Positions 8,138 to 8,484 of a stretch of 64,000 bases of DNA are shown in pieces; the stretch's first letter is position 1; every line of letters starts with the position of its first letter. The DNA comes from Podarcis bocagei (taxonomy: Eukaryota), in assembly GCA_964188305.1 (NCBI GenBank), contig OZ076892.1, one strand, 5' to 3'. The notes below the pieces were generated by a model. The model was not told the DNA's origin. It searched no databases and was given only the letters and a program-made list of their open reading frames with translations. A program made the position numbers and the translations under genes.

Positions 8138-8484
8138 ATGATTGTCGTTGCTTTGGTTGTGTTCTATGCGAGCAGGAGCCTTCTCCAAGGTTTACGGCTG
8201 ACCCTTGAACAGCACATTCCCTGTTTGCTGCAAACCTTGGGGGCTAGCAGCATGGGCAACTCCTGTGTTTGTCGGGAAGACAGTGGGGTAGAAGACAATG
8301 CAGAATCCAGAAGTCGCCAGACAGAGAACAGCAGAGTGCCTGTATCGGACTCCAGGAGCCACCCGAGGGATCCAGTGAGGCCCCCCCGGCGGGGACGGGG
8401 GCCACATGAACCAAGAAGAAAAAAACATAACGTGGATGGATTAGTACTTGACACGCTAGCAGTGATTCGGACGTTGGTAGACAA
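8138..8484 (+). CDS. RSPRY1: RSPRY1 coding exon 1 (exon probably begins at 7990)
   Basis: [10 protein letters not shown]...MGNSCVCR...[17 protein letters not shown]; donor aa|gtaagt; upstream acceptor ttttttcttaccctccag| at 7989. Confidence 0.95.

Follow-up and report, generated by a model that had tools for sequence, protein, structure and literature searches.

RSPRY1 carries two conserved in-frame start codons, the second of which opens a candidate lipidation motif

We propose that one RSPRY1 mRNA has two conserved in-frame starts and gives rise to two N-terminal forms, and assign this reading a probability of roughly 0.58. It is based on the first coding exon of RSPRY1 in Podarcis bocagei, located in a stretch of 64,000 nucleotides that was analysed as a whole (the window), and on comparison with orthologues from mammals to invertebrates. 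The second start codon, ATG2, encodes Met39 of the annotated protein. By its conservation and context, it looks like a genuine, ancient initiation codon of the family. RSPRY1, which bears the label 'secreted' in databases, is probably made at least partly as a lipid-anchored intracellular ubiquitin ligase. In humans, loss of RSPRY1 causes a skeletal dysplasia, namely the Faden-Alkuraya type of spondyloepimetaphyseal dysplasia.

Gene identity and exon structure

The features of the locus are compiled in Table 1. The first coding exon is preceded by the acceptor ccctccag/GCC at 7989/7990, and RNA reads place its donor AA/gtaagt at 8484/8485. The RNA evidence comprises two stranded runs from a close relative (~2% diverged) that cover the exon at a depth of 4-14x. 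Eleven reads break off at 7988/7990, where they continue into a GC-rich exon further upstream; another nine break off at 8484 and run on into the next exon. The last codon is completed by that next exon, and the exon end was corrected to 8484. The raw frame shows a 'K-stop' that stems from reading on into the intron, because the reads end the exon at this position. The 116-residue 'RSPRY1 isoform X2' entries of alligator, turtle and several birds correspond to the exon read into the intron (Lys, then stop) and are therefore probably intron-retention models. The GC-rich first exon seen in the reads has no match in positions 1-7989 of the window, where a CpG island is also absent. This places the RSPRY1 promoter and first exon upstream of the window, and intron 1 is therefore longer than 8 kb.

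The reads are labelled as the same species and show seven fixed differences from the window, i.e. ~2% (8048, 8236, 8251, 8365, 8371, 8419, 8464). One of them lies in the leader (8048), five affect third codon positions, and one changes codon 38 from Ser to Arg, leaving the A at -3 of ATG2 intact. The runs seem to originate from a close relative or a divergent population.

The exon product is 90% identical to that of Varanus komodoensis, 84% to those of colubroid snakes and 84-86% to the RSPRY1 exon products of turtle, alligator and birds. With the frog orthologue (P0057, 575 aa) as tblastn query, 14 colinear exon matches were obtained between 8138 and 31702. Exon-by-exon Pfam searches yielded SPRY and zf-C3HC4_3 matches below the whole-protein cut-off, since the exon pieces are fragments; within the product of the first coding exon, no Pfam family was detected. 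First-exon homology and the order of SPRY followed by a C-terminal RING, colinear with the orthologues, identify the predicted gene as the RSPRY1 orthologue.

Table 1. Positions of RSPRY1 features in the window
Feature	Position	Strand	Evidence or characteristics
First coding exon (second mRNA exon)	7990..8484	+	Span matched by stranded RNA reads
Cluster of six upstream ATGs	8002..8141	+	ATG and frame reading of the exon leader
ATG1 (Met1)	8138..8140	+	Weak context gtctagATGat, T at -3, A at +4
Codons 1-24, conserved apolar N-terminal extension (11 apolar residues, Arg13)	8138..8209	+	dN/dS 0.07-0.29
Codons 25-38, variable linker	8210..8251	+	dN/dS about 0.16-3 and close to 1 where comparisons are deep
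ATG2 (Met39)	8252..8254	+	Strong context agcagcATGgg, A at -3, G at +4
MGNSCVCR, candidate motif for myristoylation (Gly40) and palmitoylation (Cys43, Cys45)	8252..8275	+	
Ser49 codon (= mouse Ser50, reported phosphosite)	8282..8284	+	Ser49 at least 90% conserved
Codons 77-116, invariant basic stretch and exon-closing helix motif	8366..8484	+	dN/dS at most 0.02
Remaining 13 RSPRY1 coding exons	12549..31702	+	tblastn of frog orthologue P0057
SPRY pieces	23660-27425	+	Pfam SPRY, searched exon by exon
RING piece	31541-31702	+	Pfam zf-C3HC4_3, searched exon by exon

The leader and the first start codon

An initial annotation of this DNA had described ATG1 as a weak start with a pyrimidine at -3 that opens a hydrophobic, signal-like stretch. 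Both descriptions are accurate: the context deviates at -3 and +4, and eleven apolar residues follow before Arg13. An in-frame TAG (8135-8137) directly adjoins ATG1. It terminates a 42-codon uORF in frame 0 (8009-8137), which ends exactly on ATG1, and the distance of 114 nt (38 codons) from the uORF stop to the second ATG given in the initial annotation is correct. The upstream ATGs at 8025, 8028, 8082 and 8085 are in the +1 frame and share a TGA stop at 8139-8141, which overlaps ATG1 as ATGA. Between the two starts there is a single ATG (8166, tctATGc), whose 11-codon frame ends before ATG2.

This arrangement was compared with other loci. The ATG1 context tctaRATGat is common to six tetrapod loci, and an in-frame stop fills positions -3 to -1 in all six. 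Only this abutting stop is kept in tetrapods, since the squamate contig nearest to the window (L001) has a shortened version of the 42-codon uORF. Three teleost and two invertebrate-type loci differ in showing a G at -3 of ATG1, which is a fair context. The teleost loci contain ATGATATGA instead, a two-codon frame that overlaps ATG1. In the window and the tetrapod loci, a suboptimal first AUG is followed by an optimal in-frame second one with no strong AUG in between. A depletion of ATGs between the starts was considered as further evidence and discarded: base shuffles gave 6 observed versus 18.8 expected (P = 0.0005), and the effect was lost under codon-order shuffles (6 observed, 8.1 expected, P = 0.24).

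The RNA reads, at 4-14x depth, revealed neither an internal joint nor a pile of read starts within the exon. At this depth, all transcripts that bear ATG2 also contain ATG1 and the upstream ATGs. An alternative transcript without ATG1 was not seen; a minor internal transcription start is possible at such coverage. As the reads support one acceptor only (7990) and lack joints or piles of starts inside the exon, the short form would need to arise in translation.

Selection on both N-termini

To assess vertebrate conservation, 44 exon products ranging from mammals to teleosts were aligned, and dN/dS was determined at codon level for nine loci in ten pairwise comparisons. The analysis used a single mammalian contig (L005); it has many residue differences from the chimpanzee product P0018, the stand-in for the human protein, and is therefore not regarded as human. 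In the alignment, Met39, Gly40, Asn41, Cys43 and Cys45 are invariant, and M1, I2, V3, A11, R13 and L15 are at least 90% conserved. Towards the end of the exon, 41 invariant columns were counted in codons 77-116, and the final motif is kept in invertebrates, too.

The initial annotation had set codons 1-38 against those from 39 onward. This contrast applies to the linker (codons 25-38), which evolves nearly neutrally, and to codons 39-50 with a dN/dS of at most 0.13. It does not apply to codons 1-24, which are also constrained. Their dN/dS of 0.07-0.29 indicates that the Met1 form is a selected product and not a relic. Both N-termini are under protein-level selection. The length of the linker varies among orthologues, and the frame between the starts is always kept. 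Counting from Met1, charge first occurs at Arg13 in 187 of 195 sequences. In terms of hydropathy, the best 19-residue segment scores 1.76 in the lizard product and 1.37 at the median.

The second AUG is conserved beyond its surroundings, with Met39 being invariant next to a linker whose dN/dS is near 1. None of the 242 orthologue clusters scored departs from the pattern Met-Gly-x(1-2)-Cys. For an internal Met beside a neutral linker, an occasional change to Leu, Ile or Val would be expected.

The second start codon and its motif

ATG2 is in frame with ATG1 and lies in a strong context, as the initial annotation stated. The purine at -3 and the G at +4 were found in 11 of 11 loci, ranging from lizard to two distant invertebrate-type contigs, and several of these have the context accATGg. 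Among 178 sequences, the residue preceding Met39 has eight identities, none of which belongs to a codon family that begins exclusively with a pyrimidine. This argument for a purine at -3 is weakened by the abundance of Thr, Ala, Gly and Ser at positions -2 to -4, and the pattern may be taken as mild support for ATG2. Calculated for the closest squamate relative of full length (P0169, 575 aa, Met39), the short form would be 537 residues long, as proposed in the initial annotation. The sequence MGNSCIC that the annotation gave for the human protein agrees with the database proteins of primates and other mammals.

N-myristoylation can be roughly predicted by the PROSITE pattern PS00008, G-{EDRKHPFYW}-x(2)-[STAGCN]-{P}, used here as a rough rule. 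All vertebrate-type motifs, with Val or Ile at position 6, fail this pattern; in GNSCVC the failure is due to Val at the fifth pattern position (position 6), the residue that had already raised doubt in the initial annotation. As a sequence-based criterion, this lowers the likelihood of myristoylation without excluding it, and myristoylation of the vertebrate MGNSC[VI]C motif is uncertain. For dual acylation, two invariant cysteines, Cys43 and Cys45, are located within about 5 residues of Gly40.

Orthologues beyond tetrapods and teleosts

To find distant counterparts of the exon product, 1.84 billion representatives were searched with a profile, and a second search was made by words. The exon products recovered have the same closing motif and the same donor as the first coding exon of RSPRY1, and contig L010 is a true orthologue, with its following exons matching RSPRY1 at 43-70%. 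One invertebrate-type group keeps both starts: it has an invariant M-I-x-x-x-W and, 29-80 residues further on, M-G-x-C-x-C. A second invertebrate group begins at Met-Gly. Here, the RefSeq model of the limpet Patella vulgata starts with MMGCC and the model of P. caerulea with MGCC, and about a dozen further invertebrate exon ORFs (unnamed products) start at Met-Gly. In three of the Met-Gly-start exon ORFs, in-frame upstream read-through was inspected and contained no MIV-type extension.

Of 50 clusters with the invertebrate motif MGxC[VLI]C[KR], 48 pass PS00008 as the rough rule used here; the vertebrate motif contains one extra residue by comparison. Judging from these predicted proteins, part of the family genuinely begins at Met-Gly, which has the form of a canonical lipidation signature there.

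Gene-caller products that start at MGN (P0026, P0029) were considered as cases of a lost Met1 and rejected. Such products prove nothing, because the contigs carry an intact in-frame MIV extension upstream in both cases. Two shark products from protein models start with MGNSCVC, P0063 from Pristiophorus japonicus and P0055 from Rhincodon typus. The divergent, 'RSPRY1-like' sawshark product P0063 is possibly a paralogue without the MIV extension. In locus L009 (3990-4095), the sequence tttacag in front of ATG2 resembles a splice acceptor, which is not conserved elsewhere. An alternative acceptor just ahead of the second start is conceivable in L009.

Published human and mouse data and competing readings

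In HeLa cells, alkyne-myristate enriched human RSPRY1 5.9-fold (Thinon 2014, PMC4200515): each of the 4 labelled replicates yielded 4 peptides, the controls none. No N-terminal Gly is annotated for this entry, which is flagged for one palmitoylome study. RSPRY1 recurs in YnMyr pull-down tables of Broncel 2015 (PMC4471546), and its capture by alkyne-myristate is known from published tables for two cell lines, HeLa and HEK293. Altogether, the human data fit an acylated cytosolic RSPRY1. The lipid-anchored product proposed in the initial annotation gains from this capture and the palmitoylome flag and loses from the failure of the vertebrate motif in PS00008.

The supplementary files examined of Thinon 2014 contain no entry on a response of RSPRY1 to NMT inhibitor, and RSPRY1 is absent from the examined supplements of Kallemeijn 2019, Goya Grocin 2019 and a 2023 study on liquid-liquid extraction. 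A literature search retrieved no GNSC[IV]C peptide of the kind that the initial annotation had named as a check, no initiation-site, N-terminal-peptide or NMT-inhibitor data for RSPRY1, and nothing relevant in which RSPRY1 is mentioned together with myristoyl, palmitoyl or translation initiation.

The strongest competitor of the dual-start reading is the use of Met1 alone. RSPRY1 would then be cytosolic and membrane-associated, an NatC-acetylated MI- end would dip into membranes, Cys43 and Cys45 would be S-acylated, and Met39-Gly40 would be kept as an acylation or recognition motif and not as a start. YnMyr also labels S-acylated proteins, as Thinon 2014 (PMC4200515) stresses with the warning that Met-Gly is missing from 60% of such hits, which may be S-acylated. 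Cys acylation of the Met1 form would therefore be an equally good fit to the pull-downs. In addition, RSPRY1 is a putative NatC substrate (MI-), the level of which is shifted in NatC-knockout cells (Varland 2023, PMC10611716); the supplements of this study that were examined contain no N-terminal peptide of RSPRY1. The NatC data speak for a cytosol-exposed Met1 form. Purifying selection on codons 1-24, the frame that is always kept and the vertebrate motif that departs from the NMT consensus are likewise in line with exclusive use of Met1. This reading leaves three observations unexplained: the internal Met is never Leu, Ile or Val in about 240 clusters although it stands beside a neutral linker, the purine at -3 of ATG2 is constant, and limpets and other invertebrates start the protein exactly at Met-Gly. 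We regard it as rather unlikely.

The initial annotation had gone further than two starts and suggested the Met39 form as main product, with a minor or accidental Met1 form. One half of this claim stands, as ATG2 looks like a genuine ancient start that is invariant and has a purine at -3 in all loci compared. A dominant Met39 form would also suit the weak tetrapod ATG1 flanked by uORF stops, the optimal ATG2 and the invertebrates that have the MG start only. The other half is not supported, since codons 1-24 have been under constraint across roughly 450 million years, and Met1 is not a minor by-product. Furthermore, the signature MI..W does not vary among those distant invertebrate-type sequences in which the extension is present, fish and invertebrate loci have G at -3 of ATG1, and the NatC data imply that the MI- form is substantial in humans. 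A main product starting at Met39 with a merely minor or accidental Met1 form is improbable.

Several observations concern the side of the membrane on which RSPRY1 resides. In mouse, Rspry1 is phosphorylated at Ser50 in liver and fat, and this phosphorylation was also seen in synaptic membranes (PMC12860745). The phosphosite is located ten residues after the motif Gly. RSPRY1 has been reported as cytoplasmic. Two pooled CRISPR screens found cell-autonomous knockout phenotypes for RSPRY1 (PMC10611716; PMC12979199), which are not expected of a diffusible secreted factor. The databases read the protein differently: Met1 would open a cleaved signal peptide, RSPRY1 would be a secreted glycoprotein, and MGNSCVC would be lumenal or extracellular and unrelated to initiation. 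Residues 2-12 are apolar and followed by Ser-Arg-Ser, matching the h-region (11 residues, where 7-15 are typical) and the c-region (small residues at -3 and -1) of signal peptides, and RefSeq names one orthologue 'precursor'. Recent work treats RSPRY1 as secreted and proposes ubiquitination outside the cell, relying on UniProt and BioGRID classification only (PMC11817781). No experiment demonstrating secretion of RSPRY1 was found in the literature search. The extension is far more conserved than usual signal peptides and has no basic n-region. A RING ligase located outside the cytosol would lack E2 and ubiquitin. As acyl labelling, phosphosite, cytoplasmic report and cell-autonomous knockout phenotypes all point to the interior of the cell, secretion of RSPRY1 is very improbable.

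A model for two forms of RSPRY1

The dual-start reading can be formulated as follows. In tetrapods, initiation at ATG1 would be handicapped by the stop that fills positions -3 to -1 and by upstream frames that end on or overlap ATG1. Ribosomes that nevertheless initiate at ATG1 would synthesize the long form with its conserved 11-residue apolar stretch followed by Arg13. This N-terminus may be either signal-like or a membrane-dipping end of the NatC type. By scanning past ATG1, or by rescanning after the uORFs, other ribosomes would start 114 nt downstream at the optimal ATG2 and produce a form shorter by 38 residues that begins with Met-Gly-Asn-Ser-Cys-Val-Cys. Upon removal of Met, Gly would be open to myristate and the two Cys to palmitate. 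The acylated short form would be a RING/SPRY ligase tethered to the cytosolic face of membranes. We infer that ATG2 is used in vertebrates as well and that Gly40 may carry myristate even though position 6 is Val.

A bolder version can be envisaged. Both forms might be cytosolic and membrane-tethered, the long one via an NatC-acetylated apolar helix and the short one via myristate and palmitate, and RSPRY1 might never be secreted. The uORFs ending on ATG1 might then act as a switch for form ratio and membrane address that is set by the availability of initiation factors and dates back to early animals. In its entirety, this scenario is tentative and rather unlikely to hold.

Comparison with known systems

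The motif resembles the SH4-type dual acylation signals of the Src family, e.g. MGCVQCK in Fyn and MGCGCSS in Lck. Like these, the short form of RSPRY1 would have an N-terminal Met-Gly and Cys within the first seven positions. The similarity to Fyn is closest for the invertebrate MGxCxC[KR], in which Cys likewise occupies position 6 and position 7 is basic. In vertebrates, in contrast, the extra residue shifts the motif and places Val or Ile at position 6. A further difference is that the Met-Gly of RSPRY1 lies within the annotated frame and would become N-terminal only if translation were also initiated there.

N-myristoylated RING E3 ligases are known: RNF11, ZNRF1, ZNRF2 and MGRN1, of which RNF11 adds palmitate on a nearby Cys. 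RSPRY1 would join them as a candidate for a cytosolic RING ligase tethered to the membrane by a lipid on its N-terminal Gly. Whereas these four have annotated Met-Gly starts, RSPRY1 would depend on its downstream start for this, and there is in addition the long form, whose apolar N-terminus is different.

Osteopontin exists in secreted and intracellular forms due to alternative initiation downstream of the signal sequence. In both genes, one mRNA has two in-frame starts, and the downstream one omits a signal-like apolar N-terminus, leading to an intracellular form, which in RSPRY1 is a predicted one. However, the long form of osteopontin is secreted and that of RSPRY1 only putatively so, and the short form of RSPRY1 gains a lipidation motif.

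In ATF4, uORFs control start selection by delayed reinitiation. By analogy, the RSPRY1 uORFs that end on or overlap ATG1 would send reinitiating ribosomes 111-114 nt downstream. In contrast to ATF4, the bypassed and the used start of RSPRY1 share the frame of one protein. Finally, the Met1 form begins with Met-Ile as do NatC substrates with Met-hydrophobic N-termini (Varland 2023, PMC10611716), a likeness that concerns the long form only.

Current reasoning on the disease mechanism leans on the database label 'secreted protein' (PMC11817781). If a lipid-anchored cytosolic ligase arises from the second start, substrates will have to be sought in other places, N-terminal variants read anew and tagged constructs designed differently. 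Should both starts be used, one form would be lost whenever the N-terminus is tagged or a cDNA lacks its native leader. The case also illustrates that a hidden start inside an annotated frame can be recognised by evolution alone: by an invariant Met-Gly, a neutral linker and relatives that start there.

The gene downstream of RSPRY1

Downstream of RSPRY1, five exon matches (38927-44648, plus strand) to the ARL2-binding-protein part of fused RSPRY1-ARL2BP models were observed. The CpG-rich segment at 35500-36000 (about 35.5-36 kb) may be the promoter of this ARL2BP gene.
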